DNA of 64,000 nt, from sequence record NC_019410.1; one strand, given 5' to 3'. Shown here one piece after another: positions 163-64,000 of the stretch; within the stretch, counting starts at the first letter, position 1, and every line of letters begins with the position of its first letter. The translations under genes and the position numbers were made by a program. Below the pieces are notes generated by a model, which worked only from the letters and a program-made list of their open reading frames with translations, was not told where the DNA came from and did not search any database.

Positions 163-164
163 GG

Positions 165-7219: not shown

Positions 7220-7265
7220 TCCGGTGCTCGTCTATAGGGGAGACCGGGACGACAACGAAAGGAGC
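7199..7265 (+). promoter_or_regulatory. phage promoter cassette
   Basis: TGGC-N9-TTGACA(7212)-N17-TAGGGG-N6-GGACGACAAC-GAAAGGAG. Confidence 0.8.
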
Positions 7266-7270
7266 CTGCC

Positions 7271-8592: not shown

Positions 8593-8600
8593 GAGGACCC

Positions 8601-8840: not shown

Positions 8841-9228
8841 GGTCTTCCCGCCGATCCGCCCCCGCGAGGCCAGGGACGAGGAAATCCACGGCTTCGTCGT
8901 CCGCTACGGCTGGTTCTGGAACGTGACCCTGCTGAACGGCACGATCCTGGCCTTCGATCCCGACGATGTCGACCCCTGCCGCTACGGCGTGACGGGCAAG
9001 GACGACTTCCGCAACCTCGCCGGCGCGCCCGAGACGATCGCGGCCTACGAGTGCGTCCAGGGCTGGCACGCCAAGGCCAAGCACCTCTCGGGCTGGACCG
9101 AACGTCACGACGACCGGCTCGAAGCCCTGCGGACGGCTTATCGCCGCCTGGAGGAGCAGCGCGAGCGCAACAGCCGCGCCCTGGAGGAGCACGGCGGCAT
9201 CTTCAAGTTTCTGGAAGGTCAGGACTGA
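8833..9228 (+). CDS. hypothetical protein (131 aa)
   Basis: ORF 8692..9228 trimmed to MSEVFPP. Confidence 0.7.
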   Translation: MSEVFPPIRPREARDEEIHGFVVRYGWFWNVTLLNGTILAFDPDDVDPCRYGVTGKDDFRNLAGAPETIAAYECVQGWHAKAKHLSGWTERHDDRLEALRTAYRRLEEQRERNSRALEEHGGIFKFLEGQD

Positions 9229-9470
9229 TGCAGAGGACCCTCCATTCGACCGGCCAGGAACTTTCGGTCAAGTTCAAGTTCCCGAGTGAAAACCTGACCT
9301 TGACCGTGCATGCCGAACAGGACAGCCCGATGGCGTTCCTTTGGGTCGAAGGCCGTTCGGTCGACTATTTCGAGAAGCTCCTGAGCTTCGAGCCGGCCGA
9401 TCTCGATCTCTTGATCGCCACCCTGTCCGAGGCGCGCAAGATGATCCGCGAGCGCGAGCCGCAGGACTGA
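9228..9470 (+). CDS. hypothetical protein (80 aa)
   Basis: TGATG coupling; MQRTLHS. Confidence 0.65.
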   Translation: MQRTLHSTGQELSVKFKFPSENLTLTVHAEQDSPMAFLWVEGRSVDYFEKLLSFEPADLDLLIATLSEARKMIREREPQD

Positions 9471-9471
9471 C

Positions 9472-9726
9472 ATGCTGACCAAGGACGAGATCACCTTCGC
9501 GGGCCTGATCAAGGCCATGGAGGACGCCCGACGCACCGCCAAGGCGGCGGGCGATCTCGTCAGCACGGCCGAGATCGACCGCTGGTTCAAGGAACACGCG
9601 CCGATCATCCGGGAGGTCCGCGACAAGGCCGAGGCCGACGAATTCGACGCTGGCGCGAGAGTGTTGACAGCCTCTGAGGAAGGGGCTAAAGACACCCTCG
9701 ACGACAGCGAAAGGAGCCTGCCTTGA
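9472..9726 (+). CDS. hypothetical protein (84 aa)
   Basis: ORF track; 3' end overlaps next promoter. Confidence 0.65.
   Translation: MLTKDEITFAGLIKAMEDARRTAKAAGDLVSTAEIDRWFKEHAPIIREVRDKAEADEFDAGARVLTASEEGAKDTLDDSERSLP
9651..9716 (+). promoter_or_regulatory. phage promoter cassette
   Basis: TGGC-N9-TTGACA(9664)-N17-TAAAGA-N6-CGACGACAGC-GAAAGGAG. Confidence 0.8.
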
Positions 9727-10742
9727 CCGACTTCCCGATCATCCGCGCCGCCATCTCGCCCCGCCGGACCGCCCAGTTCGACGCCGCCCTGGCGAACGTG
9801 AAAGCCTTCACCGAGGAAGGCGTCCTGATCAAGGCCGAGTGGAACGACATCAAGGACACGTTCAGCCGCGCGATCGCCGAGACCTGGGACGCGTTCAAGG
9901 ACAAGGAATACTATCCTCGCGCCCGCCAGGGCGAGCATGAGAACGTCGGCAAGCTCTACTGGGAGCTTCTGAGCCCCTACCCCCATGTCCTGGCCGGCTA
10001 TCTGAAGAAGGTCCAGAACGCCAAGAACATCGAGCCGGCGATCCTGCGCGATTTCCCGATCGCCTTCTTCACCGAGGCCCTGCCGCTCAACGACATGCTG
10101 GTCGCCCTGAAGCCGCTGATCGGCAAGCGCGCGCCGAAGAAGACCAAGGTCCAGATCGAGCGCGAGGGCAAGGAACGGACCTGTCAGGTCTGCGGTCGCG
10201 GCATCCTGGCCGAGAACGGCCGGATCGCCCACCACGGCTATCAGCGCCCCGGCATGGGTTATCAGACCCCCTCGTGCAGCGGCGCCCTGGAACTGCCCTT
10301 CGAGATCAGCCGCGACGCCTTGGGCGCCGACATCGAGAACCTGAAGGCCTACCGCGCCCGCCGCCAGACCTATCGCTCCGACGTCAACCTGGAACTGGTC
10401 AGCCTGCCGGTCAAGTATCAGGTCTCCGAGCAGGACCCGCGCCGCGCGCCGGGCTTCAAGCACGTGGTCGACAAGATGATCCACGTCACCCGCGCCGACT
10501 GGGACGCCCAGAAGGCCGAAACCCCCGAGGCCTTCGCCGGCAAGTACGGGCCGCGTAAGCCCAACTACACCTACGAGCCCTTCACCTTCGACGCCCTGAA
10601 GACCCAGGTCCTGGGCATGGTCGACGGCGAGATCGAGTTCATCACCGGCACGATCCGGGCGCAGCAGAAGCGCTATGACGACTGGAAGCAGACGATGGAG
10701 TTCGTCGACGGCCAGTATCGGATGCTGGAGGTCGCGGCTTGA
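9723..10742 (+). CDS. hypothetical protein (339 aa) with CxxC...HH...C zinc-finger-like motif
   Basis: TTG start after RBS; RTCQVCGR...IAHHGY...PSCSG. Confidence 0.75.
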   Translation: MTDFPIIRAAISPRRTAQFDAALANVKAFTEEGVLIKAEWNDIKDTFSRAIAETWDAFKDKEYYPRARQGEHENVGKLYWELLSPYPHVLAGYLKKVQNAKNIEPAILRDFPIAFFTEALPLNDMLVALKPLIGKRAPKKTKVQIEREGKERTCQVCGRGILAENGRIAHHGYQRPGMGYQTPSCSGALELPFEISRDALGADIENLKAYRARRQTYRSDVNLELVSLPVKYQVSEQDPRRAPGFKHVVDKMIHVTRADWDAQKAETPEAFAGKYGPRKPNYTYEPFTFDALKTQVLGMVDGEIEFITGTIRAQQKRYDDWKQTMEFVDGQYRMLEVAA

Positions 10743-51792: not shown

Positions 51793-54525
51793 GTGAGCTA
51801 CTATCCGATCGAGGACCGCGCCAAGGCCCGGTCCGTCGTCAAGAACCTGCTGGACCTTCAGCGCGAGGCGGTCAAGGCCTCTCGCGGCGGCCTGATCCTG
51901 CCGCCCGACCAGAAGGCGATCATCACCCAGGTCACCGAGACCGAGGACCCGGCCCGCTGGGTCGACCTCCTGGGTCAGTTCGCCGATCGCGTCCAGACCG
52001 ATCACCTCGCCCGGCTCAAGCCCCTGGCCAAGCACGACTTCAACGCCTTCTGCGAATACGTCAACCCCGAGGAGGCCCCGGCCTCCAAGTGGCACGTCTA
52101 CCTGACCTCGCTCCTCCAGGAGATCGAGAACAACCACGAGCTTGAGCGCTTCGTGCTCAACTGCCCGCCCGGTCACGCCAAGCCGCTCGACGTCGACACC
52201 GAGGTCCTGATGGCCGACGGGTCCTGGAAGCGCCTGGGCGACATCACCGTGGGCGAGTACGTGGTCGGCGAGAGCGGCGCGCGCTGCAAGGTCACCGCCG
52301 TCCACGAGCAGGGCGAGCTTGCCACCCTGAAGATCACCACCGCCCACGGCCGCCAGATCATCGCCGCCCCCGATCACGCCTTCCGGGTCGGAAACACCTG
52401 GAAGGAGGCGGGCAAGCTGCGGCCGGGCGACGCTCTGTCCGTGGTCGGCGCCGCCAACCTCAACTACGACGCCAGCGGCAAGACCATCGACCACTTCGAG
52501 CTTGCCGCCTACCTCCAGGCCAAGGGCGGACGCTCCTACTTCCACCGCGTCCACAAGAGCGGGCCGAAGACCTACCGCAACGTCTTCCTGTGGACTTCCG
52601 ACCACCGCGAGGCCAGCAAGATCAGCGCCTGCCTCAAGCGCCTGGGGATCGCCTTCAAGGGGCGTCTGGCCAAGCACGAGCAGGTCTGGAAGATGCGTCT
52701 GGCCACCGAATGGGGCGACGCCCTGGCCGAGGAGTATGGCCTGGACGCGCGGATCGACGCGCGGCGGGTTCCGGCCTTTGTCACGAAAGGCGACGAGGAG
52801 CAGATCGCCCGCTACCTGTCGACCTACGCCTCCCTGGCCGGCGAGGCGCCCGACCGCTACACCATCCCGCGCATCATCCTCTACTTCAAGAACCCGGCCT
52901 TCGCCCGCGACATCCAGCGGCTGTTCGCCGTGGTCGGCGTCAACGCCCGCATCGAGGGGCGCAAGACCGGCCGCACCCGGCTGATCCTGTCGGGGCCGGA
53001 CCTGGAGGCCTACTTCGCCGCCGGCCTGACCTACACCGGCCCCAACGCCGACAAGCTCGACGACAAGCGCGTGGCCTTCCCGACCTCGCCCTCGCTGCTG
53101 GCCGACACCGTCACCTGGATCGAGCCGCACGGCGTGCGCCCCTGCCGCTGCCTGACCGTCGAGGACGAGCACACCTTCATCGCCGAAGGCGTGGTGGTCC
53201 ACAACTCGACCTACGCCTCGCGCCTGTTCGTGGCGTGGCGCCTGGGGCGCGATCCGCGCCAGAAGATCATCGGCGGCGGTCACTCCCAGCGCTTCGTCGA
53301 GAACGAGTTCTCCGGCAAGATTCGCAACCTCGTGCGCACCCCGCAATATCGCGACGTGTTCCCCGACGTGGTCATCGACCACGCCACCTCGGCCAAGGAC
53401 ATGTGGGCGATCGCCGGGCACGGCGGGCAGTACGCCGCCAAGGGCGCGGGGCAGGCCATCCACGGTCTGCGCGCCCACTTCGTCTGCGTCGACGACCCCT
53501 ACCGGTCGATCGAAGTGGCCGAGTCCGCGATCGAGCGCGAGAAGATCAAGACGTGGTTCTTCGGCGACGTTGGCTCGCGTCTGTTGCCGCTCGCCAAAGT
53601 ATTCCTCATCATGACGCGCTTCCATGAGGAAGATTTGACCGGGGAGATCATCAAACTCAACCAAGAAGTTCTCACCGGCGCCGACCGTTATCACATCGTT
53701 GAAGCGCCCGCCCTGTGCTACGACCCCGAGAACGACGTCCTGGGCCGGGCTCTGGGCGAAGTTTTGTGGGACTACTATGACTTGCATTATTTCAAGCGCA
53801 AGCGGTCCGAGTGGAAGTACCAAAGATTTGCTTTGGTTTATCAACAACTTGCCGACGCGGCCTCGGACACCTCCATCGCGTCCAAGTTTCAGACCTACGA
53901 TCACCTGCCCCACCTGGAGCCGAAGGTGCTCAAGGCCCGGCTTGACGCGGGTCACGCCGACGAGCGCGGGCGGCCGATTCCGGACCGCAAGGAGCACTTC
54001 CGGCGGGTGGTGGTCAGCGTCGACTCGGCCAACAAGCCCGGCGCCCGCAACGACTACAGCGTCGCCCAGGTCTGGGGGGAGACCCACGCCCGCAAGCACT
54101 ACCTGATCTACCAGGAGCGCAAGAAGGTCGACATCACCGGCCTGACCGAGATGATCGAGCGGGTGGCCAAGCGCTACGAGGTCGACGCCATCCTGGTCGA
54201 AGACAAGGGCAACGGCACCGCCTACATCCAGGCGCGGGGCCAGACCGACAGCCAGCGGCGGCTCGCCCCGGCCCCGATCGAGGCGATCCAGGTCCCGAGC
54301 ACCTATTCCAAGGAGTTCCGCTTCAACGAGATCGTCCCGATGATCGAGGCCGGCGAGGTCTTCCTGCCGGGCAAGGCCCCGTGGCTCGACCTGCTGATCC
54401 GCGAAATCGGTCAGTTCCCCGAAGGCGCCCATGACGACCAAGTCGACGCCATGACGCAGTACCTCCGCTGGGCCAAGTCCAAGCGCACGCGGTTCGGCGC
54501 GCGCAAGGTCGGCTCGATGGGCTGA
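51793..54525 (+). CDS. terL: terminase large subunit with intein (910 aa precursor, ~569 aa spliced)
   Basis: Walker A PPGHAK/S split by intein; Walker B FVCVDDP; coupling motif MTRFH; nuclease VVSVDSA...NDYS...HDDQVDAMTQ. Confidence 0.95.
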   Translation: MSYYPIEDRAKARSVVKNLLDLQREAVKASRGGLILPPDQKAIITQVTETEDPARWVDLLGQFADRVQTDHLARLKPLAKHDFNAFCEYVNPEEAPASKWHVYLTSLLQEIENNHELERFVLNCPPGHAKPLDVDTEVLMADGSWKRLGDITVGEYVVGESGARCKVTAVHEQGELATLKITTAHGRQIIAAPDHAFRVGNTWKEAGKLRPGDALSVVGAANLNYDASGKTIDHFELAAYLQAKGGRSYFHRVHKSGPKTYRNVFLWTSDHREASKISACLKRLGIAFKGRLAKHEQVWKMRLATEWGDALAEEYGLDARIDARRVPAFVTKGDEEQIARYLSTYASLAGEAPDRYTIPRIILYFKNPAFARDIQRLFAVVGVNARIEGRKTGRTRLILSGPDLEAYFAAGLTYTGPNADKLDDKRVAFPTSPSLLADTVTWIEPHGVRPCRCLTVEDEHTFIAEGVVVHNSTYASRLFVAWRLGRDPRQKIIGGGHSQRFVENEFSGKIRNLVRTPQYRDVFPDVVIDHATSAKDMWAIAGHGGQYAAKGAGQAIHGLRAHFVCVDDPYRSIEVAESAIEREKIKTWFFGDVGSRLLPLAKVFLIMTRFHEEDLTGEIIKLNQEVLTGADRYHIVEAPALCYDPENDVLGRALGEVLWDYYDLHYFKRKRSEWKYQRFALVYQQLADAASDTSIASKFQTYDHLPHLEPKVLKARLDAGHADERGRPIPDRKEHFRRVVVSVDSANKPGARNDYSVAQVWGETHARKHYLIYQERKKVDITGLTEMIERVAKRYEVDAILVEDKGNGTAYIQARGQTDSQRRLAPAPIEAIQVPSTYSKEFRFNEIVPMIEAGEVFLPGKAPWLDLLIREIGQFPEGAHDDQVDAMTQYLRWAKSKRTRFGARKVGSMG
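52183..53205 (+). mobile_element. intein (341 aa), Pro1 / Cys-F4, degenerate LAGLIDADG domain
   Basis: Starts PLDVDTEVLMADGSWK; block B AAPDHAF; block F CRCLTVEDEHTF; ends GVVVHN with Ser+1. Confidence 0.92.
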
Positions 54526-54598
54526 CGAGGCCCGTTAACCACGTTTGTTAACCTCCGCCGGGGCCTTAACCCTAACACGGCGAGGGTTAACAGGTCCA

Positions 54599-54736
54599 GG
54601 GACCCTTCGAAATTAACCTTTCGGGGACCCTGGGAAATCGTAAGGCAGGGACCCTGGCCATTTTCCGGCTGGGGACCCTGGCAAATTCACCGCCGGGGAC
54701 CCTCCGAAATTCATCCTCGGGGACCCTGGCAAATCA
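54599..54736 (+). repeat. six ~24-bp tandem repeats, core GGGACCCT(GGC/CCG)AAATT
   Basis: GGGACCC at 54599, 54624, 54648, 54672, 54696, 54720. Confidence 0.9.
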
Positions 54737-54747
54737 AGGAGCCGGCG

Positions 54748-54939
54748 ATGGCCGAATTTCTCGCCCTGATCCCCAACCTCGCGCCGTTCCTGGTCTGGGG
54801 AATCCTCCTCTGGATCGCCGCCGAGGTGGTCTGGAGCGTCTGCCTCTGGGTCTATGGCCTGCGGACCCTGTTCAAGTTGCACCGCGATGATCTGGCCGAG
54901 GCGATCAGCTTCGAGCGGGCCTTGAGCCCCTTCGACTAG
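54748..54939 (+). CDS. small membrane protein (63 aa)
   Basis: AAGGAG RBS; hydrophobic LAPFLVWGILLWIAAEVVWSVCLWV. Confidence 0.7.
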   Translation: MAEFLALIPNLAPFLVWGILLWIAAEVVWSVCLWVYGLRTLFKLHRDDLAEAISFERALSPFD

Positions 54940-55022
54940 GCGCGGCCTGCCGACCTAAGTCACGGACTGTAGGTTTCGTGACAAGGTGAGATATTCCACA
55001 ACGATTTCAAAGGCTTACTGCG

Positions 55023-55271
55023 ATGTCGATCCGCACGTTCTTCCACGATCTGGCCGTCCGTTTCGTCGTTTTGGGGTGGATTTTTGCCCGAAAACCGCTG
55101 AAATGGGCTCCAAAAGGGCATAATTTTCAGCCTAAACCGCCGGTCCAGGTCGGCGCCCTGGCGGCCGGCTCGCTCCTCGCCCTCAGTCTGGCGCTCGGCG
55201 GGCTCTGGTTCCGCTTCACGTTTCCGGACAAAAGTCAAGTGGTCTCGCGCCGGCCGCAGGCTATGTCATAG
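55023..55271 (+). CDS. small membrane protein (82 aa)
   Basis: Two hydrophobic segments; lower GC; weak RBS. Confidence 0.5.
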   Translation: MSIRTFFHDLAVRFVVLGWIFARKPLKWAPKGHNFQPKPPVQVGALAAGSLLALSLALGGLWFRFTFPDKSQVVSRRPQAMS

Positions 55272-55332
55272 ACCGTGGGCTTCGTGACCAGATCACGCTT
55301 CCGTTACCGCTCCAGCCCTTGTGAGGCCTCGG

Positions 55333-55437
55333 ATGTTCGCCTTTCTCCGCCGGCTCAGCCTCGCCGCCGTCCATGGCGTGCTCTGGGCGATCCTCCTGGC
55401 GATGCTCGCCCTGGGCGGGCCGCGCCGCCCGCTCTAA
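55333..55437 (+). CDS. 34-aa hydrophobic peptide
   Basis: Manual translation MFAFLRRLSLAAVHGVLWAILLAMLALGGPRRPL; GAGG RBS. Confidence 0.55.
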   Translation: MFAFLRRLSLAAVHGVLWAILLAMLALGGPRRPL

Positions 55438-55489
55438 AGCGTCATATCTGACGCCTAAGGCCCCCTAAGGCCTCATCTGTGAGACATTC

Positions 55490-55525
55490 AACGCCCTCGT
55501 GTTCCTCTGAACGCGGGGGCGTTTT
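55490..55525 (+). terminator. Rho-independent terminator
   Basis: AACGCCCTCGTGTTC-CTCT-GAACGCGGGGGCGTT (G-U pairs) then T-run. Confidence 0.7.
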
Positions 55526-55630
55526 GACGTCGGCGCATTTTTGACTTGACGCGCGAGCGTTTTGACGCGGGCGCATTTTTGATTCGACGGGCGAGCGTTT
55601 TGACGTCCGAGCATTTTTCAACTTGACGTC
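55519..55630 (+). repeat. three 38-bp tandem repeats
   Basis: GCGTTTTGACGnnnGnGCATTTTTnAnTnGACG units at 55519, 55557, 55595. Confidence 0.9.
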
Positions 55631-55657
55631 GTTCCATTTACCGGGAGCGCCTTAGGG

Positions 55658-55824
55658 TTAACGCCGGCCGCCGAGCCCTGGGGCGATTTACCACCGCCAC
55701 GTTAACCTAACGCCTGTTAACCTATCGGTTGTTAAGGTTAACGCCCCGTTAGGGTTAACGCCCCTTAACCCTGCCCGCGTTAAGGTTAACGCGCCCCGGC
55801 CCAGGCCCTACCCGTTAACCTTAA
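55658..55824. promoter_or_regulatory. dense cluster of 11 TTAA (CtrA half-site-like) motifs
   Basis: TTAA at 55658, 55702, 55717, 55732, 55738, 55755, 55765, 55780, 55786, 55815, 55821. Confidence 0.7.
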
Positions 55825-55848
55825 CCGCCCGACCCCCGCGCCCAGGCC

Positions 55849-55882
55849 ATACCCGGTAGGGCCTGACGGCCCTACCGGGTAT
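55849..55882. repeat. perfect 15-bp inverted repeat with 4-nt loop
   Basis: ATACCCGGTAGGGCC-TGAC-GGCCCTACCGGGTAT. Confidence 0.9.
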
Positions 55883-55936
55883 GACCCCGCGCCCCGGCGG
55901 AGGCCAGGGACCGCCCCGGCGCTTTTTCGCGCCCCG

Positions 55937-55968
55937 TTTACCTTTTGTTAACGTCTGGCCTCTAGGGT
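55937..55968 (+). promoter_or_regulatory. CtrA-box promoter 1
   Basis: TTTA-CCTTTTG-TTAAC-N10-TAGGGT. Confidence 0.8.
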
Positions 55969-56016
55969 CGCCCTTGTCCCCGCCGCACTCCCGCGCCGGG
56001 CAAGGAGCTTCCCGCC

Positions 56017-56202
56017 ATGGTCCCCGACTCGATCATGAACCCCCGCGACCACTTCCACCGCCTGCGCGAGGAAACCGCCCGCGCTCTGGTCGAGGCCTTC
56101 GCCGAATCCGACCCCGGCGAGGATTACCGCGCCGAGGAAAAGGCCGGCGCGTGGGTTGTCGCCTATTACGACGCGGCGGGCGAATTCGTCGCCTATCTCT
56201 AG
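56017..56202 (+). CDS. hypothetical protein (61 aa)
   Basis: AAGGAG RBS. Confidence 0.7.
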   Translation: MVPDSIMNPRDHFHRLREETARALVEAFAESDPGEDYRAEEKAGAWVVAYYDAAGEFVAYL

Positions 56203-56226
56203 CCGCCTTCGCCCCCTGGCGCCGCG

Positions 56227-56258
56227 TTAACGGTTTGTTAACATGTCGGCGCCAGGGT
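56227..56258 (+). promoter_or_regulatory. CtrA-box promoter 2
   Basis: Perfect TTAA-CGGTTTG-TTAAC-N10-CAGGGT. Confidence 0.8.
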
Positions 56259-56301
56259 CGCCCTAGCCCGGCGCGTCGCCGCGCCTTCGGAGAAAACCGC
56301 C

Positions 56302-57105
56302 ATGCTCTACACCCCCGCCGCCCGCCGCCTTCGCGGCTATCGCGAAACCGCCGCGAAGAACGCCGAAATTCACGCCCGCCCGCACATGGCCGGCAACGTC
56401 GCCGGCTACAACGAGTCGGTGTGGCCGACGACGGCGCTAGGCGTCGCCGCCAAGGCCGGCGCCTTCAAGCGCCCCGAAACCGCCGGCAACTGGTCGGAGG
56501 ATCGCAAAGCCTATTACGCCCCCGCGTGGCCGGCCGGCTGGCGCGTGCTGGGCACGGCCGAAGAGGTCTGCCGCAAGGAAGGCTCGCGCCGGGTGGAACA
56601 TTCCGGATGGTACACGACGCCCGACGACTACAGCGCCACGCTTTCGGGCTATGTGCTGCAAATCCCCGCCCGCGACGGCCGCCCGCAATACGTCGCCGGG
56701 ACCGCCCATAGTGAATGGGACGGGGTGACCCTCTACCCCGCCGACCGCTACGACAACCCGCTTGACGCGGCGAGCGCCGCCGACCGTCACGCCGAACGCG
56801 ACGCCGAAGAGGAACGCGAATATCAAACCGCGTGGCAAGCGGGCCAGCGCTACGCCGAACTCGGCGCCGAAGCCAAGGAGGCCCGCAAGGAAGCGCTGGC
56901 GATCCTCGCCGAACGCCGCAAGGTCAAGGGGCTGGAAACCCCCGCCTTGTGCGGCGCGATCCGGGCGCAAGTCGCGGCCCTGCTAGGCCGGATCGAAGAG
57001 GCGCGCGCCTCGCGCGCCAAGCTCAAGGAAGGCGAGGACTCGCGCCTCATGTTCTACCCCTCCGCCGCCATGGTCGCGGCCTTCAATGACGGCGCGGCGT
57101 CGTGA
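56302..57105 (+). CDS. hypothetical protein (267 aa)
   Basis: GGAG RBS. Confidence 0.75.
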   Translation: MLYTPAARRLRGYRETAAKNAEIHARPHMAGNVAGYNESVWPTTALGVAAKAGAFKRPETAGNWSEDRKAYYAPAWPAGWRVLGTAEEVCRKEGSRRVEHSGWYTTPDDYSATLSGYVLQIPARDGRPQYVAGTAHSEWDGVTLYPADRYDNPLDAASAADRHAERDAEEEREYQTAWQAGQRYAELGAEAKEARKEALAILAERRKVKGLETPALCGAIRAQVAALLGRIEEARASRAKLKEGEDSRLMFYPSAAMVAAFNDGAAS

Positions 57106-57311
57106 AGGTCGCCCGCGATAGCTTCGCCGTGTTCTGGACCCTCCCGCAAGGCGGGGTCCAATTTCACGCCGACATAAAACGGGCGCTCTATCCGACCGCC
57201 CGCGACGCCGCCCGCGCTTTTAGCGCCATGTTCCCCCGTGACCGGGTCCGGAGCGTCCGCGACGCCTCCGGCCGCTTCCTGGCCTTCAAGGAGTCCGCCC
57301 CGTGCGCCTGA
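57102..57311 (+). CDS. hypothetical protein (69 aa)
   Basis: GTGA coupling. Confidence 0.6.
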   Translation: MKVARDSFAVFWTLPQGGVQFHADIKRALYPTARDAARAFSAMFPRDRVRSVRDASGRFLAFKESAPCA

Positions 57312-57583
57312 CAAGCTACAACGTCAACGGAACCGGCTTTAAGGGCGGCTCCGCCCCGCCCGTCCCCGCCCAAGGCCTGACCGGTCACGCCGACGGCTTG
57401 AACCTTTGGGTTCCCTCGCGCGAGCATATCGCCGCCATGCTCCCGCAACGCTGGCGCCACGCCTTCGCCCGCGCGTCGTTTTGGTATGACGCGCACGACA
57501 ATAAAAAGCCGTGTCGCGCCGACCTCTACGACTCGCGCGGCCGGTACCTGACTCAGGTCTGGGCGCACCCGGTTTTCAGCTAG
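57302..57583 (+). CDS. hypothetical protein (93 aa)
   Basis: AAGGAG RBS, GTG start. Confidence 0.65.
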   Translation: MRLTSYNVNGTGFKGGSAPPVPAQGLTGHADGLNLWVPSREHIAAMLPQRWRHAFARASFWYDAHDNKKPCRADLYDSRGRYLTQVWAHPVFS

Positions 57584-57589
57584 GCCAGG

Positions 57590-57625
57590 ACGCCCCGGAA
57601 AATCTTCCGGGGCGTTTACCTTTTG
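57590..57625 (+). terminator. terminator overlapping CtrA box
   Basis: ACGCCCCGGAA-AATC-TTCCGGGGCGT then TTACCTTTT. Confidence 0.75.
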
Positions 57626-57678
57626 TTAACCTCTGGCCTCTAGGGTGACTTTCGCCGCCGGGCAATCCCGCCCGCCGG
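57615..57678 (+). promoter_or_regulatory. CtrA-box promoter 3 plus AATCCC-loop hairpin
   Basis: TTTA-CCTTTTG-TTAAC-N10-TAGGGT; GGGC-AATCCC-GCCC at 57660-57673. Confidence 0.8.
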
Positions 57679-57704
57679 ACCCTCTTTCAAGGATTGCTCC
57701 CGTC

Positions 57705-58754
57705 ATGACCTCTCATTCCATGGTCGCGCACCGTTGGGCGCAGGACGACGAGAACGGCCGCACCGCGCGCGGCTTCAACATGTATTTCGAGCGCTACGGG
57801 CGCGGCGCCGACCGCGTCAACGTGATTTTTTCCTACGGGACTCACTTCCCGGCCGCCGCCTTCGTGACCGACGCGCACGGCCGCCGCGTGGTTCTGGTGA
57901 CGACTCGCGGCTACAGCGTTTCGACCGCGAAACACCTTTCCCACATCCGCCGCGCCATCCCGTCCGGGACCCCCTGCTTTTCCGTGCCGCACGTGTCGCG
58001 GATGCACAAGCCGGGCGGGTCGGGCGACTTCCACGGGGACAACCTGCGCGCCTATGTCGAGAGCGCCGCCGGCCTCGCCGAAAAGGCCAAGCGCGCCCGC
58101 GTCAACGGCCCTTGGCTGCTTAGCCAAGCCCGCGAAACCCTCGCCGAAGCGCAACGCTACGCCGACGCCTTCAAGCTGAAAACCAAGGTTCCGGCCTTGG
58201 AAGACGTCGCCGGCCAATGGGCGAAGATGACGGCCGCCAAGGCGCGGGCCGAAGCCAAGGCCAAGCGTGACGCCGAAAAGGCCGCCAAGGCGCGCCGCGA
58301 AGCCGAACGGCTCGCCGACGCCGAAGCCTTCGCCGCTTGGATGCGCGGCGAGCGCCAGAGCGCCCCGTTTAGCTACCGGGTGCGCGATGACGGGACCGTC
58401 TATCTTCGCCGCTTCCGGGGCGTGGTCCGCGACCTGCGCAGCCAAGAGCGCGACGGCTCGCGCGTCGATGAACTGCAAACCTCGCAAGGCGCGGCCGTGC
58501 CGTGGGAACACGCGGTCAAGGCCTTCCGGTTCATCAAGCTTTGCCGCGAACGCGGCGAGAGCTTCCACCGCAACGGCCGGGTGATTCGCGTCGGACACTT
58601 CCAAGTTGACGCGATCAGCCCGAACGGGGACATGACGGCCGGTTGTCACCGGTTCGCGTGGGATGAAATCGAACGCCTCGCCAGGGCCGAAGGGGTTTTC
58701 GACCTCCCCGCCGACGCTGGCGCCGTCGAAACCCGGCAAGCCGAACCGGCCTAA
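57705..58754 (+). CDS. hypothetical phage protein (349 aa)
   Basis: AAGGATTGC leader; FSYGTHF...GYSVSTAKH and TSQGA...VGHF...GCH motifs. Confidence 0.75.
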   Translation: MTSHSMVAHRWAQDDENGRTARGFNMYFERYGRGADRVNVIFSYGTHFPAAAFVTDAHGRRVVLVTTRGYSVSTAKHLSHIRRAIPSGTPCFSVPHVSRMHKPGGSGDFHGDNLRAYVESAAGLAEKAKRARVNGPWLLSQARETLAEAQRYADAFKLKTKVPALEDVAGQWAKMTAAKARAEAKAKRDAEKAAKARREAERLADAEAFAAWMRGERQSAPFSYRVRDDGTVYLRRFRGVVRDLRSQERDGSRVDELQTSQGAAVPWEHAVKAFRFIKLCRERGESFHRNGRVIRVGHFQVDAISPNGDMTAGCHRFAWDEIERLARAEGVFDLPADAGAVETRQAEPA

Positions 58755-58772
58755 GCCTCCCCGCCCCTCTCG

Positions 58773-58799
58773 CGCCCCGGCTCCCCGCCGGGGCGTTTT
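58773..58799 (+). terminator. Rho-independent terminator
   Basis: CGCCCCGG-N7-CCGGGGCG-TTTT. Confidence 0.75.
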
Positions 58800-58809
58800 C
58801 GTGTACGCG

Positions 58810-58873
58810 GTAACCTTTTGTTAACTTCTGGCCTCTAGGGTGACTTTCGCCGCCGGGCAATCCCGCCCGCCGG
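58810..58873 (+). promoter_or_regulatory. CtrA-box promoter 4 plus AATCCC-loop hairpin
   Basis: GTAA-CCTTTTG-TTAAC-N10-TAGGGT; AATCCC at 58859. Confidence 0.8.
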
Positions 58874-58889
58874 CCAAGGATCGCAGACT

Positions 58890-59189
58890 ATGAATCTTTT
58901 CGTTGTCGCCATTGACCCCGCCCTCATCCCTTCGGCCGCCGGCTTCGTGGTCGCCTCCCCCTACGGGTGCGGCAAGTGGCGCGCGTGCGTCGGGAGCGAG
59001 GCGGACATGATCGCGCTTCGCGACAAGATGCGCCGCGCGCACCCGGCCCCGGAAGGCTACAGCGTCCAGCCCCTGGCGTCGTTCCTGGCCTATCTGGAGA
59101 CGGTCGGGGATAGCCCTTATGACCGGTTCCGCGCCCATGACGCCGCCGCCCGCATCCTTGACACCCTGACGACGCATCTCGCCGCCTAG
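58890..59189 (+). CDS. hypothetical protein (99 aa)
   Basis: AAGGATCGC leader. Confidence 0.7.
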   Translation: MNLFVVAIDPALIPSAAGFVVASPYGCGKWRACVGSEADMIALRDKMRRAHPAPEGYSVQPLASFLAYLETVGDSPYDRFRAHDAAARILDTLTTHLAA

Positions 59190-59247
59190 CCCCGCCAAGC
59201 CCCCGGCCGCGCGCCGGGGGCGCTTTCCCTCGAAAGGATCGCCGACC

Positions 59248-59559
59248 ATGACAACCCGTCTTATCGCCGTTCGCGGCCCGACCGCCGCCGAACTCGCCGA
59301 CCCGTCCAGCCGCGCGGGCGGCGCCGAAGTCGTTTTCGAGCGCCGCGACCGCGAAGGCCGCACGCGCCTTGTGTTCGCCTCGACCTGCTACGGCTCATAT
59401 CAGCAATGGGGCGAAACCCGCGACGTGCTCGCCGACAACGTCGAGGCGGTCACGCTCTGGGCCGAAGGCATGGCGGCCGTTGCCGCCCTCATCGACGAGA
59501 GCGACGACGACGACGAGAGCGACGACGCCCCGGCCGAAGATGACGACGGGGAGGCGTGA
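59248..59559 (+). CDS. hypothetical protein with acidic tail (103 aa)
   Basis: AAGGATCGC leader. Confidence 0.7.
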   Translation: MTTRLIAVRGPTAAELADPSSRAGGAEVVFERRDREGRTRLVFASTCYGSYQQWGETRDVLADNVEAVTLWAEGMAAVAALIDESDDDDESDDAPAEDDDGEA

Positions 59560-59562
59560 GCC

Positions 59563-59982
59563 ATGCGCACAACCAAGGCTCAACGCTTCGCCGCCATCGC
59601 CTTTGACGCCCTGGCCAAGGCCCTAAGCGAGCCGCGCCAAGCCGTCGCCCGCGTGACCAAATGGGAGGGCGCGGGCCATAGCTTCGCCAACCTGCAACGC
59701 GATTATGAGCGGTACGGCCCCGGCGCCCGCTCATGGTTCGGCCGGGCTGAAATGCGCTTCTTTGGGACGCGCCTAGAGGCCGCGCCGCTGGATTTCCCGG
59801 CGCTGGGCTGCACCCTCTTTCTGACCTCCGAAACCCCGCCCGGCGCCGGCCGGGTCTGGACCCTTCGCGCCTATGTCTGGGCTTCGGCCGATATCACCAC
59901 GCTAACCCATGGCGACGAAACCGACGCGGCGACCGCGCAAGCGGCCTTTGACCTGCTTTGGCGGGTCCTTTCCGGACAGTAA
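59563..59982 (+). CDS. hypothetical protein (139 aa)
   Basis: GGAGG RBS; WFGRAEMRFFGTRL motif. Confidence 0.7.
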   Translation: MRTTKAQRFAAIAFDALAKALSEPRQAVARVTKWEGAGHSFANLQRDYERYGPGARSWFGRAEMRFFGTRLEAAPLDFPALGCTLFLTSETPPGAGRVWTLRAYVWASADITTLTHGDETDAATAQAAFDLLWRVLSGQ

Positions 59983-60042
59983 CCTTTTGTTAACTTCTGC
60001 CCGCTAGGGTCTTCTTGCGGCCGGGCAATCCCGCCCGGCCGC
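59979..60042 (+). promoter_or_regulatory. CtrA-box promoter 5 plus AATCCC-loop hairpin
   Basis: GTAA-CCTTTTG-TTAAC-N10-TAGGGT; perfect stem GCGGCCGGGC-AATCCC-GCCCGGCCGC 60017-60042. Confidence 0.8.
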
Positions 60043-60060
60043 ATCTTGGAGACAGCGCCC

Positions 60061-60333
60061 ATGACCCGCGCTCAAGCCCTCGCCGACATGAACGCCCTTC
60101 CCGGTATCATCGCCTCCTTTGAGCGCGAGACGGGCGAATATCGCGTGACCCTGCGCTTTGGCCCGCTCCCCATGGGGCGCGGCGCCCAAGAGTGGATGCG
60201 CGCGCGCCGCGAAGCCGTCGCCAGCTACAGCGACGACAAGGCCGACGCCCTGGCCACCGCCCGCGACATGTCCGCCCGCTGGGAGGCGATGAGCGCCGAA
60301 GAGCGTTCGCGCCTCTATCACAACCCCGCCTAA
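60061..60333 (+). CDS. hypothetical protein (90 aa)
   Basis: GGAG RBS before ATG 60061. Confidence 0.7.
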   Translation: MTRAQALADMNALPGIIASFERETGEYRVTLRFGPLPMGRGAQEWMRARREAVASYSDDKADALATARDMSARWEAMSAEERSRLYHNPA

Positions 60334-60399
60334 GACCCCGCGCGCCGCCCTGGCCTTCGCCGGGGCGGCTCCCTCAACCCCTCGCAAGGATCGCACCCC

Positions 60400-60684
60400 A
60401 TGACCGCCCGTAAGCCCCTGACCAAGGAACAAAAGGCCCGCCGCCGCGCGACCCGCCGCGCCGCCCGCCTCAACTGGTCGGATGAGCGCCGCGCTCGCGA
60501 ATTCGAGCGTCAAGCCCGCTTCTTCCTGATGATCGCCACCCGCGCCCAAGGCGCCGGCCAAGGCCAGGAAGCCGCCCGCCTCGCCACGGTCGCACAACGC
60601 AAGGTGACTAACTGGCGCATGGCGCAGGCCTGCGCCCGGATTAACGCCCTGGCCGCGCATCCGTTCGCGGCCGTGGTCGCCTAA
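60400..60684 (+). CDS. hypothetical basic protein (94 aa)
   Basis: AAGGATCGC leader. Confidence 0.7.
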   Translation: MTARKPLTKEQKARRRATRRAARLNWSDERRAREFERQARFFLMIATRAQGAGQGQEAARLATVAQRKVTNWRMAQACARINALAAHPFAAVVA

Positions 60685-60697
60685 GGAGGCCCGCCCG

Positions 60698-60880
60698 ATG
60701 ACGCACCCTCACGCCCTGGCGCTGATCGCCCTCGCCGAAAAGGTGTTACCGCTTACCCGGCTGCACCCGCTCGACCAACGCGCCGCCGCCGTCGATCTAA
60801 TCGGCGACCTCTACCGCCTCGCCGACGATATCGACGCGACCCCGCAAGCCCCCGCCCTGACGCAACCGAAGGCCGCCTAA
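60698..60880 (+). CDS. hypothetical protein (60 aa)
   Basis: AAGGAGG RBS. Confidence 0.7.
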   Translation: MTHPHALALIALAEKVLPLTRLHPLDQRAAAVDLIGDLYRLADDIDATPQAPALTQPKAA

Positions 60881-60883
60881 GCC

Positions 60884-61474
60884 ATGAACCCGAACCGCTA
60901 CCGCCTCGCGCCCCGCGACCGCTTCAGCCGTGAGCTTGCCGAAACGCTCTATCAGGCGGCCGAAGCCGTCGCCCGCGTGATTCCGCTCATGCCGGAGTCC
61001 GCCCCCGATGAGCGCCGCGCGCTGGGCAAGGTCCGCGCCGACCTTCTAACCCATAGCGCCGGCGCCCTTGTTCCCAAGCCGCCGGCCGCCGTGCTCGAAA
61101 CCCTCGTTTGGGTTGTCGAGATGGCGCAAGATCGCGCGACTAACGCCGATTTCAACACCGCCCAAGAAGGACTCGACGAGCACGAGTCCCTAGCCTTTGT
61201 CGCCGACTGGCTGGAAGCCGAAGGCCAGGACGTGACGCCGATTCGCAACGCGCAACCGTCCGCCGACGCCCTGGCCGAACTCGCCGCCCGCCGCGACGCC
61301 GAACAAGCGGCGCTAGACGCCTTGGAGGCCGAAGCCCTGGCCGAAGCGCCGGGCGACGTGATCACCGACGCCTTGCGCCCCTATCTGGGCGCCGCCCTGG
61401 CCGAAAACCACGCCGACGACGTGCTAGACGCCCTCACGCGCGCCGGCTTCCAAATCACCCGCAAGGAGGCCTAA
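60884..61474 (+). CDS. hypothetical protein (196 aa)
   Basis: Operon packing. Confidence 0.7.
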   Translation: MNPNRYRLAPRDRFSRELAETLYQAAEAVARVIPLMPESAPDERRALGKVRADLLTHSAGALVPKPPAAVLETLVWVVEMAQDRATNADFNTAQEGLDEHESLAFVADWLEAEGQDVTPIRNAQPSADALAELAARRDAEQAALDALEAEALAEAPGDVITDALRPYLGAALAENHADDVLDALTRAGFQITRKEA

Positions 61475-61479
61475 AGCCC

Positions 61480-62058
61480 ATGACCGACTCCGCCAAGATC
61501 ACCGGCGCGCTCGCGCTACTCGCCATCGCGGCCGATAATCTCCGCCAAGGCCCGGCCATGTCCAAGGCCGCCGACAACGTCACCAACGTCTGTAACTACG
61601 CCCTGACGCGCGCGACCATGCTCAAGGCCGCCGACCAAATCGGCGAGGCGCTGGAGGCGCTGGGCGCCCTGCAAGCGGGCGGCTATGTGATCGCCCGCCG
61701 CCGCGACGTTTTCACCGATGCGGGCGAGAAGCTGGGCGACCTGTTGGCGGCGCTTTATGACGCCGTCCCGAACTACGCCGTAAGATCGCAGCGCCTCGCC
61801 GACGCCCTGAGTCCCGCGCGAAATTACGTCTATCAGCCCCGGTTCCGGGTCAAGCTGGACGCCGCGCCCGGCGCGCTTTTGACCGACTGCGACACGGGCG
61901 CAACGGTCTATTTCCAGCCGGGCGACGACGCCGACGCCTTCCGGGCCGAATTCGCCCCGTGGGTTCACGCCGCCAACGTGACGGCCGAAGGCGCGGCCCT
62001 GGCCTCGATGATGAACCCGACCGCCGAAGAGTATTTCAGCCCCGCCACGGGGGTCTAA
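61480..62058 (+). CDS. hypothetical protein (192 aa)
   Basis: AAGGAGG RBS. Confidence 0.7.
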   Translation: MTDSAKITGALALLAIAADNLRQGPAMSKAADNVTNVCNYALTRATMLKAADQIGEALEALGALQAGGYVIARRRDVFTDAGEKLGDLLAALYDAVPNYAVRSQRLADALSPARNYVYQPRFRVKLDAAPGALLTDCDTGATVYFQPGDDADAFRAEFAPWVHAANVTAEGAALASMMNPTAEEYFSPATGV

Positions 62059-62063
62059 CGCCC

Positions 62064-62366
62064 GTGGCCCTGACCTTCGCCCCGCAATCGACGCGCTACG
62101 CCGTGGAAGTCCCCGAACGCGACTTTCTGGCCCTGACCCGCGCCGAGGAAATTCTAGCCCCTGGCCCCTATCTGGAGCCGTCGCTTAGCGAGCGTTTGGA
62201 GGCGCAAGCCGGCGTTTGGGATGTCGAGTATAACGGCCATTTCGGCGCGGCCGTTTACTTGACGCTCGACGTTGACGCCGACTCCCCGGCCGCCCGCGAC
62301 GCCCTGGCCTCGATCATCGCCGACCAACTGGCCAAGGCCAAGGCGTGGAAGCGCCAGCCCGCCTAA
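62064..62366 (+). CDS. hypothetical protein (100 aa)
   Basis: GTG 62064 within ORF 61959..62366; WDVEYNGHFG motif. Confidence 0.65.
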   Translation: MALTFAPQSTRYAVEVPERDFLALTRAEEILAPGPYLEPSLSERLEAQAGVWDVEYNGHFGAAVYLTLDVDADSPAARDALASIIADQLAKAKAWKRQPA

Positions 62367-62547
62367 GTCATCATTCCTATCGTCTATGACTTGTCACCGG
62401 CCGAACTCTTGCCCGGTGACAGTCTGGGCAAGTAAAGCTCACTCTGGATTTTATGACTTAGCGCAAAGGATTGAAATTGCTCGAAAAATTCCTCGAAGCT
62501 CACAAAGTTGTTTTCTGGCTGCTTTTGCTGGCCTGTTTGTGGCGCTT

Positions 62548-62613
62548 TTAACGGTTTGTTAACCCCTGGCCCTCTAGGGTCGAATTCCCGGCGCGGCAAT
62601 CCCGCCGCCCGGC
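62548..62613 (+). promoter_or_regulatory. CtrA-box promoter 6 plus AATCCC-loop hairpin
   Basis: Perfect TTAA-CGGTTTG-TTAAC-N11-TAGGGT; GCGGC-AATCCC-GCCGC. Confidence 0.8.
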
Positions 62614-62634
62614 CTTCCTTCGGAGCTTCTGATC

Positions 62635-63081
62635 ATGTTCGCTTCCGTGACCCTTCCCGCCCATGACGCCCAAGGCCTGAGCCTCGAAACCGTCCACATG
62701 GTTTTCGCCCGCGAACTGGCGCAACATTTCGACCACGTGATTTCCGCCCCCGTGGTCGAAAGCTGGCGCGACGAGGACACCGGCGCCGACCACGCGCAAG
62801 CCGCCGTTTGCTTCACCGTCTCGGCGACCCCCGCCGCGTGGGAAGCCAAGGGCGGGCGCCTCGCGCGCCGGCTGGAAAACCTCGCCGCGCGCTATGCCGC
62901 CGACTGCGACGCCCCGGCCCTGACTGTCACCCACTGCGACGGCCAAACGGTCTATGTCGGCGCTCTGGAAGCCCTGGCGCGCCCCGCCCCGGTGCAAGGC
63001 CCGACCCGTGAGGCGGACCCGGCTTTCCTCCCCCGCCAGCGTGAGGACAAGGCCGCCCGCTTCGATCGCCTGACCGCCTAG
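62635..63081 (+). CDS. hypothetical protein (148 aa)
   Basis: GGAG RBS. Confidence 0.7.
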   Translation: MFASVTLPAHDAQGLSLETVHMVFARELAQHFDHVISAPVVESWRDEDTGADHAQAAVCFTVSATPAAWEAKGGRLARRLENLAARYAADCDAPALTVTHCDGQTVYVGALEALARPAPVQGPTREADPAFLPRQREDKAARFDRLTA

Positions 63082-63097
63082 CCCCTGGCCTCCCCCT

Positions 63098-63130
63098 AGC
63101 GCACCGCCCCTAGAAAGGCGGTGCGCTTTT
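63098..63130 (+). terminator. Rho-independent terminator
   Basis: AGCGCACCGCC-N8-GGCGGTGCGCT-TTT. Confidence 0.8.
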
Positions 63131-63139
63131 CTGTGTCTG

Positions 63140-63172
63140 TTTACTTGTTGTTAAGGAATAGCCTGCTAGTGT
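63140..63172 (+). promoter_or_regulatory. CtrA-box promoter 7
   Basis: TTTA-CTTGTTG-TTAA-N12-TAGTGT. Confidence 0.7.
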
Positions 63173-63223
63173 CCCCTTGTTGGCGGACGCATCCCGCGCC
63201 CGCCCCTTTCTGGATCGCTCCCC

Positions 63224-63616
63224 ATGGCTCGCCCCTCTGACCTGCTCAACGTCAACGCCGCCCGCGTCCTGGCTTGCCTTGAGCCTATCGCCGCCGCCGC
63301 TAAGACCGCCCCGGCCGCCGACCGCGCCGCCCTTTCCTACCTGCTCGACGCTGGCGAGTATGTCGCCGCGTGGCGCCGCAACCTCACGGAAACCGACCGC
63401 CGCAAGGCCTATGGCGCGGCCTGCGCCGCCGAAGCCCTGGCGCTCGCTAACGCCTATCAGCCCGCCACCCTGCAAGGCGGCGCCGTCCGCCGCGCTCTGG
63501 GCGCCTATGCCGCCGCCCTAAAGGTCCTGCTAGACGGGGAGCCGGTCAAGGCGGTGCGCGCCGCCGAAGGCGCGGCGCTTTCGGTCCGCGCTCGCTACGC
63601 CAACACCCGCCTTTAA
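63224..63616 (+). CDS. hypothetical Ala-rich protein (130 aa)
   Basis: GGATCGC leader. Confidence 0.7.
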   Translation: MARPSDLLNVNAARVLACLEPIAAAAKTAPAADRAALSYLLDAGEYVAAWRRNLTETDRRKAYGAACAAEALALANAYQPATLQGGAVRRALGAYAAALKVLLDGEPVKAVRAAEGAALSVRARYANTRL

Positions 63617-63644
63617 CCTCTTGTTAACACCTCCCGGCTATGGT
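63613..63644 (+). promoter_or_regulatory. CtrA-box promoter 8
   Basis: Perfect TTAA-CCTCTTG-TTAAC-N10-TATGGT; first TAA is the upstream stop codon. Confidence 0.8.
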
Positions 63645-63670
63645 CGGGAGGTCGCAAGGAGACACCCGAC

Positions 63671-63865
63671 ATGACCCGCCCCGGCCCCGCCTCGCTCCTG
63701 ACCCCGCAAGCCCGCTTCTCGTCGCCGCGCGTCCTGATCCTTCCGGGCGCGGCTCCCATGCCGATTCGCCAGCCGCGCGGCCTTTGCGCCGTCGAGTGCG
63801 TCGCCCTTGGCGTGACGCTGGGCGCGGCGCTCTACCTCGCCGCCCGCGTGTTCGGTCTGGTCTGA
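63671..63865 (+). CDS. small protein with C-terminal TM helix (64 aa)
   Basis: AAGGAG RBS; VALGVTLGAALYLAARVFGLV. Confidence 0.6.
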   Translation: MTRPGPASLLTPQARFSSPRVLILPGAAPMPIRQPRGLCAVECVALGVTLGAALYLAARVFGLV

Positions 63866-63899
63866 CCAGACCCCCGCCCCGCCCCCGGTCGGACCGGTC

Positions 63900-63928
63900 G
63901 GGGGTGTGTCCCATAATGACACACCCCC
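63900..63928. repeat. perfect 11-bp inverted repeat
   Basis: GGGGGTGTGTC-CCATAAT-GACACACCCCC. Confidence 0.8.
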
Positions 63929-64000
63929 GCCACCTAGTATCTTTTTTGATTCGGAGGGACCCAAAGGCCCCCTACGTTAACCATTTTTGGCGGCGCCCCC

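Follow-up and report, generated by a model that had tools for sequence, protein, structure and literature searches.

We analyzed the last 64 kb of the genome of Caulobacter phage CcrKarma (Karma below) as one stretch of 64,000 nucleotides (the window, to which all positions refer unless another sequence is named), and focused on a short hairpin with the loop AAUCCC that follows four of the early promoters in it. Positions 57400–63900 of the window are 100% identical to positions 3654–10154 of the Karma record (JX100811), and positions 53747–64000 constitute the right-hand copy of the direct terminal repeat (DTR), which is about 10 kb long and is annotated in the record as 1–10254. All 20 genes of the DTR are annotated as “hypothetical protein”. 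Gene gain, loss, and rearrangement have been reported for this region, and the high density of CtrA sites that phiCbK-like phages have in their DTRs is likewise published (PMC9437464).

The promoters of the DTR share a common layout, in which a CtrA box, TTAA-N7-TTAAC (the first half-site often being TTTA or GTAA), is followed by a spacer of 10–11 nt and a TAGGGT −10 element; across the promoters the −10 is of the TAnnnT type, a hexamer lying 10–11 nt past the CtrA box. The sequence TTGTTAAC occurs eight times in the window against an expectation of 0.09, and all of the copies lie at 54545–63628, that is, inside the DTR only. By their sequence geometry (TTAA-N7-TTAA, a 5′ nucleotide near −39, and a sigma-73 −10), these are CtrA-activated promoters of the host type. 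CtrA binding and CtrA-dependent activity were shown for the gp005 and gp018 promoters of phiCbK (PMC9437464), the second of which is the orthologue of Karma promoter P6. The four promoters with an AAUCCC hairpin are all on the plus strand: P3 (57615–57646), upstream of gp008, with a TTTA-N7-TTAAC box, a 10-nt spacer, the −10 TAGGGT, and a predicted start near 57654; P4 (58810–58841), upstream of gp009, which belongs to a copy of the P3 cassette (96% identical); P5 (59979–60010), upstream of gp012, with a predicted start near 60017; and P6 (62548–62580), upstream of gp018, whose orthologue in phiCbK is both bound and activated by CtrA. At each of them, the −10 is followed by 7–10 nt, the hairpin, a Shine-Dalgarno (SD) sequence, and ATG.

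The loop together with its closing pairs, GCAATCCCGC, occurs four times in the window (57662, 58857, 60025, and 62596), always on the plus strand and always 17–18 nt past a TAGGGT −10. The mean number of copies in shuffled sequences was 0.51, and none of 100 shuffles reached four. The bare hexamer AATCCC was not enriched in the window (18 observed versus 30 expected); what is non-random is the hexamer in combination with the closing GC pairs and the position. RNA folding placed AAUCCC in a hexaloop at all four promoters, with leader energies of −15 to −27 kcal/mol. The hairpins, likewise on the plus strand, lie at 57655–57678 after P3 (loop 57664–57669; nine stem positions with one C.C mismatch), at 58850–58873 after P4 (loop 58859–58864; a copy of the P3 hairpin), at 60017–60042 after P5 (a perfect 10-bp stem, loop 60027–60032, with a folding z-score of −3.8), and at 62588–62612 after P6 (loop 62598–62603, with a differing inner stem, GCGGC/GCCGC plus CCGG). 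Each is a single hairpin of 22–28 nt in a leader of about 40–55 nt. The loop positions given by the original prediction, 57664, 58859, 60027, and 62598 behind CtrA promoters, were thus reproduced exactly.

Two further statements of that prediction held in part. It described stems that differ and yet remain paired, and pairing is indeed kept across the changed stems; however, P3 (57612–57678) and P4 (58807–58873) represent one 67-nt cassette in two copies with 96% identity, and the window therefore holds three independent stems rather than four, and two of the stems carry an internal C.C mismatch or bulge. It also called the AAUCCC loop invariant, which is true of one class of hairpin (class A), whereas other promoters of the DTR carry other loops at the equivalent place, namely ACUCCC after P1 (gp004; 55979–56000), UCGC on a GGCGCG/CGCGCC stem after P2 (gp005; 56270–56285, a different class), and AUCCC after P7 (gp019; 63182–63204, class B), all on the plus strand. 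The element matched no covariance model of Rfam at E ≤ 1 in 53700–64000. The words hairpin, stem-loop, inverted repeat, and leader are all absent from the paper on the CtrA promoters (PMC9437464), and the phiCbK genome paper mentions neither a hairpin nor a stem-loop. The promoters are therefore already known, and the leader hairpin appears to be undescribed within the literature searched, as the original prediction had supposed.

Whether the hairpin lies inside the transcript was assessed from predicted start sites and from public RNA-seq assemblies. Starts were predicted by two independent rules, one placing the start 7–8 nt from the end of the −10 and the other placing the CtrA motif’s 5′ nucleotide at −39, as at host ctrA P2 (PMC4287350). 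The two rules agree at P3–P6, where the predicted starts (57654, 58849, 60017, and 62587, respectively) lie at or immediately before the first paired bases (57655, 58850, 60017, and 62588), and at most promoters a purine follows pyrimidines at the predicted offset. Over all of the classes, core stems begin 6–13 nt past the −10 (mode 9–11), which corresponds to 0–5 nt from the predicted 5′ end. The assemblies were those of runs SRR25662239-264, which, judging from their number range, date, and behaviour, are probably the Illumina stranded RNA-seq of phiCbK infection (GSE241057, PMC10688885). Seven of their contigs begin 3–34 nt upstream of the gp004 ATG and none of the seven begins upstream of P1. 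The longest begins 15 nt past the P1 −10, inside the left arm of the ACUCCC hairpin, so that the loop and the right arm of this hairpin are transcribed. In an unrelated run, SRR5714933, one contig does reach into the sequence upstream of P1. The original prediction had named a start site downstream of the hairpin as evidence against an RNA element; this is excluded by the contigs at the sister promoter P1, and at the AAUCCC promoters we infer the exact start site from the two rules.

To place these hairpins in a wider context, we compared the DTRs, or else the sequence that follows TerL, of Shapirovirus (phiCbK, Ccr5, and Swift), Poindextervirus (Rogue and BL10), and Colossusvirus (Colossus and PW) members, of RBC8 and BL57 (close relatives of Rogue and BL10 whose records carry no genus), of CcrSC (Bertelyvirus), of the Brevundimonas phages Bajun and Marchewka, of Mesorhizobium phage Cp1R7A-A1, and of one uncultivated relative. 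A hairpin, called when at least 5 Watson-Crick pairs could form within 34 nt past the start region, was found at 85 of the 103 promoters of ten Shapiro-, Poindexter-, and Colossusvirus genomes, compared with 23% of the controls (2657 windows taken from the same loci), which is a 3.6-fold enrichment at a fixed position. The mean folding energy was −15.6 kcal/mol for the leaders and −9.2 kcal/mol for the controls (p = 7e-19). In contrast, only 1 of 29 promoters of the Brevundimonas phages had a hairpin, their leaders being short and unstructured, and CcrSC, which infects Caulobacter, has a different type of promoter. The search for uncultivated relatives via TerL gave one useful contig (L258) with few hairpins.

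The 34 distinct hairpins were grouped by their loops. AAUCCC (class A) was the most frequent, with 11 members, followed by AUCCC (four), ACUUCC (three), AUCGG (three), and three variants of a CUGGAAA-type loop, while AACCC, ACCCC, ACACC, ACUCCC, AUCG, CGG, CCAC, CCAG, GCCG, and UCAUCAAC occurred once each. Most of the loops fit GC-A-N(1-3)-CC-GC, and those of class B differ at the second position only (A[U/C/A]CCC). Apart from a single case in Bajun, which has a GAGGC/GCCTC stem, AAUCCC is limited to Shapiro- and Poindextervirus; class B hairpins are common to distant genera that infect the same host. Of the 67-nt cassette there are five copies, including two that are 96% identical. The AAUCCC hairpin is one class within a family of promoter-plus-hairpin cassettes; in three genera of Caulobacter phages, nearly all early genes are preceded by such a cassette. 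A covariance model built from class A matched at promoters only in 284 kb. Scans of viral and genome contigs for GTTAAS-N26-36-GCAATCCCGC were swamped by chance matches, and only the known phages were real. One match, in contig L028, adjoins a terminase that resembles those of Burkholderia phages; the host of such a phage probably lacks CtrA, and the match was therefore rejected as chance.

A second architecture was observed at P8 (gp020; 63629–63652, plus strand), where a GC-rich inverted repeat (ACCTCCCG...CGGGAGGT) encloses the −10 rather than following it and is itself followed by a conserved CATCAAC leader. The same arrangement was found in Rogue (locus L003, 6683) and in Bajun (locus L011, 18954–25000), where it predominates. 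Since the repeat encloses the −10, it cannot form in the transcript of that promoter itself.

The original prediction had proposed covariation as a check, and the class A alignment, which is ungapped and comprises 23 distinct sequences (one of them the L028 row, probably a chance match), does contain it, though independent events are few. In this alignment, 82% of the cells were paired, compared with 33–50% when the partner was slid, and changes on both sides of a pair were found at 5 of 11 pairs (16 cells). The covariation score was 0.194 against 0.092 in shuffles, none of 500 of which reached 0.194. The loop and the three inner pairs are invariant in all 23 sequences. The orthologous gp012 promoters of seven genomes, from two genera, share one identical 28-nt hairpin but vary in the promoter spacer and the SD region; BL57 carries another hairpin there (stem GGGCGGGGG/CCCCCGCCC, loop AUCG) in exactly the same place. 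The kept pairing, the invariant gp012 hairpin, and its substitute in BL57 argue for selection on structure at this position, and for purifying selection on the hairpin at the gp012 promoter. The strength of this argument is limited by the small number of independent events. Further, left arms are combined with various right arms, as would result from recombination between cassettes inside a conserved core.

Taken together, we tentatively interpret the element as a 5′-terminal RNA stem-loop, carried in a modular early-promoter cassette, that would protect or insulate the mRNA; this is a possibility that we prefer without regarding it as established. In such a scheme, the host RNA polymerase would transcribe the early genes from the CtrA-activated promoters of the DTR, and the AAUCCC hairpin would come to lie at the 5′ end of the early transcript or a few nucleotides from it, where it would act in cis and influence what becomes of the mRNA. 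A paired 5′ end might hinder 5′-end-dependent decay, that is, the removal of pyrophosphate by RppH and 5′-end sensing by RNase E, and the hairpin might also hold the GC-rich leader in a local fold, so that the SD sequence a few nucleotides downstream would stay free. We infer such an effect on stability or translation from the position and the conservation of the hairpin. The cassettes would be modules that can be exchanged, having been duplicated and having recombined inside the conserved core, and this could be part of the reason why the loop and the inner stem are so uniform.

Several observations weigh against this interpretation. For the protection of an end alone, any loop would do, but neither the loop nor the three closing pairs vary in class A. 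Several stems have C.C mismatches that are uncompensated, and a strand test gave no support for RNA over DNA, since the opposite strand folds as well, even slightly better. That small advantage is an effect of base composition, seen alike in the leaders and the controls; internal mismatches are mostly C.C and G.U pairs are rare, and as both strands fold, wobble pairs do not discriminate between RNA and DNA. At some promoters, as described above for P8, the inverted repeat surrounds the −10 and falls outside the promoter’s own transcript. The Brevundimonas relatives and CcrSC manage without leader hairpins. Lastly, the starts of the AAUCCC class are predicted only, the assemblies breaking at the 31-mer limit in the P3/P4 repeat, and RNA-seq contigs run through P5 and P6, indicating read-through. 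Pairing of the loop with the SD sequence of the same leader was also evaluated; the mean run was 3.34 nt, compared with 3.27 nt for permuted partners (p about 0.1). The complementarity of 3–4 nt between loop and SD is the trivial match of UCC with GGA and no more.

Functionally, the best fit among known systems would be the 5′-terminal stabilising stem-loop of E. coli mRNAs. Such stem-loops stabilise mRNAs in E. coli, according to the works of Emory (1992) and of Bouvet and Belasco (1992) as they are listed in PMC3997798. Like ompA hp1 and papA, the phage leaders have a stable hairpin predicted to lie 0–5 nt from the 5′ end and upstream of the SD sequence, in a host with RNase E. The E. coli hairpins differ in that they need no particular loop, whereas the loop and closing pairs of the phage hairpin are conserved; moreover, the phage element is repeated on almost every early transcript.

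As an alternative, which we regard as unlikely, the hairpin could serve as an RNA tag whose sequence is recognized by a protein, for instance gp013 or a host factor, that would control elongation (by N/boxB-like antitermination), timed shut-off, or translation of the early regulon. This would account for the feature that end protection leaves unexplained, as the loop and the closing pairs are invariant over 23 distinct stems, including the GAGGC/GCCTC stem of Bajun, and class B loops vary at the second position only. On the other hand, sister promoters have AUCGG, AUCG, CGG, CCAC, and CUGGAAA loops at the same place, and a single reader cannot read all of these loop classes. The Arg-rich protein of 94 amino acids pointed out in the original prediction, gp013 (60400–60684, plus strand; phrog_6524, function unknown), is real and conserved, and it is the candidate for binding the hairpin. 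It has a conserved Arg-rich N-terminal helix followed by an invariant AARL-WSDE motif, and tblastn detected its family in Shapiro- and Poindextervirus and, at greater distance, in Colossusvirus, and only there; these are the three genera that bear leader hairpins. This distribution is, however, shared exactly by gp014 and gp015 and almost so by gp006 and gp016. In addition, no Pfam domain, PDB sequence match, or fold match was found for gp013, and hence none to an RNA-binding family; its structure model has three helices with a pLDDT of 76 and was built from only three sequences.

The terminators of the DTR bear on the same question, since the original prediction described transcripts interrupted by intrinsic terminators and likened the hairpin to boxB/nut, with antitermination among its possible roles. 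Of the terminators that it listed, those at 58772–58796, after gp008 and directly before P4, and at 63098–63127, after gp018 and directly before P7, were confirmed, and another one (57588–57617) ends the gp005–gp007 unit directly before P3; all three are on the plus strand. The one near 59200 is weaker and was missed by our scan, though a terminator is annotated at the homologous place in phiCbK. This terminator-like hairpin separates gp009 from gp010–gp011, which have no promoter of their own. Contigs of the probable phiCbK RNA-seq runs were observed to cross the terminator after gp007 into the next cassette (phiCbK locus L430, 6480–6538, the homologue of 57588–57640 in the window), so termination at that site is incomplete during infection. 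These contigs, the promoterless gp010–gp011 behind the weak internal hairpin, and the strict conservation of the loop and closing pairs keep antitermination alive, but the read-through in deep RNA-seq data may be mere leakage. Since every unit has its own promoter and clear terminators stand at the unit ends, antitermination would probably not be needed to express the genes.

The comparison with the known antitermination systems points in the same direction. Like lambda nutL/nutR with N, Karma combines a short hairpin in an early leader, an early Arg-rich protein in the same phage, and downstream terminators. However, boxB has a GNRA-like, purine-rich pentaloop on a 5-bp stem, in contrast to the 6-nt AAUCCC loop on stems of 5–11 bp, and the lambda system requires boxA and places its sites at the head of long operons with distal genes that depend on read-through, whereas the strong terminators of Karma are each followed by a new promoter and only gp010–gp011 lie behind a weak internal one. 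With CGCUCUUA and GCUCUUUAACA-like sequences as the boxA reference, no match to GCTCTTTRACA with at most one mismatch was found in the window. HK022 putL/putR are likewise cis RNA elements near early promoters, but they are about 65–70 nt long, form two stem-loops, and act on RNA polymerase without a protein, whereas the element described here is a single hairpin of 22–28 nt that occurs in several classes. Given the 6-nt loop, the lack of boxA, the single hairpin, the separate promoters, and the varied loops in equivalent promoters, the antitermination claim was not supported; the element belongs to neither the nut nor the put family, and mRNA protection or tuning is more likely than a lambda-style antitermination site. 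A boxA-like sequence, CGCTCTTTGACAT, was observed in a hairpin leader once per genome in Swift (locus L004, 2682), Rogue (L003, 2666), and RBC8 (L010, 2371), and on the minus strand in PW (L006) and Colossus (L007). This leader resembles the boxA of rrn antitermination, is absent from Karma, and is unlinked to the AAUCCC hairpins.

In its broadest form, the tag would be GC-AAUCCC-GC (more generally GC-A-N(1-3)-CC-GC) on most CtrA-dependent early transcripts, with a dedicated factor, gp013 or a Caulobacter protein, switching the whole early regulon; we find this version more doubtful still than a protein-read tag as such. If it were correct, a regulon-wide tag of this kind (for antitermination, timed stabilisation, or shut-off) would represent a new form of RNA-protein control in phages, unrelated in sequence to N/boxB.

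Returning to the 5′-terminal stem-loop in a modular cassette that we prefer, its architecture is best matched by the promoter-early stem-loop (PeSL) cassettes of T4-type phages. These are repeated cassettes of about 70–100 nt in which an early promoter of the host type is joined to a GC-rich stem-loop (frequently GGGC...GCCC) and an SD sequence; they stand before ORFan early genes in a plastic region with signs of recombination between cassettes (PMC2839356, PMC4122927), sometimes inside the loop (PMC2839356). The corresponding features of Karma are the five copies of 67 nt, downstream genes all of unknown function, and the DTR rearrangements (PMC9437464). The two differ in that the stem-loops of PeSLs lie mostly between or over the −35 and −10 and terminate upstream transcription, whereas the Karma promoter is CtrA-dependent, the stem-loop lies mostly just past the start, the loop is conserved, and the terminators are separate.

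This resemblance raises the possibility that the hairpin acts at the level of DNA or of the cassette, as in PeSLs, by forming a module boundary that attenuates upstream transcription and by providing short homology for the shuffling, duplication, and exchange of early ORFans; we hold this to be no less doubtful than a tag read by a protein. Copies such as P3 and P4, 96% identical among the five of the 67-nt cassette, and the mixed arm combinations, which leave C.C mismatches, are what crossovers in a conserved core would produce. The cassettes do precede ORFans in a region of gain, loss, and rearrangement (PMC9437464), a repeat around the −10 is one of the positions described for PeSLs (PMC2839356), and class B hairpins are common to distant genera on the same host. 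Before P3, P4, and P7 of Karma, however, there are already canonical terminators apart from the hairpins, and the hairpins have no U tract. Their position is tightly fixed after the start site and not scattered as in PeSLs, and at orthologous sites the hairpin is more conserved than the remainder of the cassette.

It is distinctly improbable that the inverted repeat is a double-stranded operator at +5 to +30 for a repressor, either a shut-off protein of the phage or host SciP (motif GCGNC-N5-GNCGC). SciP represses CtrA-activated promoters in swarmer cells, which are the cell type infected by phiCbK, and the P6 hairpin reads GCGGC-N6-GCCGC, with the arms of class B also representing GCGNC-type half-sites. 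The commonest stem, CCGGGC/GCCCGG, nevertheless lacks GCGNC, which is a low-information motif in DNA of 67% GC; the spacing and orientation are unlike a full SciP site, and in the host such sites are located at −60 to −90. Conservation is found in the asymmetric center and variation in the arms, which is the reverse of what a dimeric operator would exhibit. The SciP motif and GANTC methylation sites were tried as candidates and did not fit the main class of stem. Least probable of all is that the motif has no function of its own and was carried along by recent cassette duplication in a readily folding GC-rich genome, for although P3 and P4 are duplicates and a 5-bp hairpin occurs in 23% of random GC-rich windows, the hairpins are enriched 3.6-fold over controls at a fixed position, stay invariant at orthologous sites while the flanks diverge, and have unrelated stems occupying the same place.

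The loop sequence is also reminiscent of C-rich seed loops, namely UCCC in S. aureus small RNAs (sRNAs) and CCCC in loop A of Caulobacter CcnA (PMC8959179), which share with it a (U/C)CCC loop on a GC stem and complementarity to ribosome-binding sequences of the GGGA/GGAG type. Those RNAs act in trans, whereas the phage loop matches its own SD sequence over only 3–4 nt, no better than it matches permuted partners.

Among the phages of Caulobacter, phiCbK is the classic one, and the description of how CtrA controls its early genes (“lytic deferment”) is recent and ends at the promoter. Should a conserved hairpin stand at the start of almost every early transcript, there would be a second layer of control, through mRNA lifetime, translation, or a loop-specific reader, and this layer would set the amount of early protein made after CtrA has fired. 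With these cassettes, modular promoter units of the PeSL kind would be seen for the first time outside the T4-type phages, and they would help to explain the plasticity of the terminal repeats.

Other features were observed in the course of this comparison. A structured and conserved sequence of about 60 nt containing GGGCTCTTCGAACCG occurs directly after CtrA-type promoters in several copies and both orientations, without an obvious open reading frame (ORF). It was found in PW (L006; about 1935, 3991, and 8938 on the minus strand and 6069 on the plus strand), in Colossus (L007; about 1886, 3451, and 8224 on the minus strand and 5077 on the plus strand), and in BL57 (L009; about 2276 on the minus strand). 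The element had no Rfam match, is absent from the window, and is a candidate small RNA family.

Within the window, the 190-nt gap between gp017 and P6 (62370–62560) is AT-richer, which is unusual at 67% GC, and contains a 10-bp hairpin (TGTCACCGG...CCGGTGACA). About 12 GTTAAC or TTAAGGTTAAC half-sites are clustered in the non-coding sequence before P1 (55640–55830), in agreement with the published density of CtrA sites, and upstream of this cluster a 38-nt unit containing TTGACG...ATTTTTGACTTG is repeated three times (55511–55628) without an annotated gene. A search of ten DTR proteins (gp008–gp016 and gp018) against Pfam gave a sole match, that of gp011 (59563–59979) to DUF7447 (E = 8e-22). 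The large terminase gene (51793–54525) is annotated in the record with an intein; since the left boundary of the DTR lies inside this gene, the C-terminus of TerL is duplicated in the repeat. Between the TerL stop and gp001, about 4–6 copies of a 24-nt unit (GGGACCCTGGCAAAT...) were observed at 54648–54734 (from about 54590), an array that is possibly a packaging or replication site.

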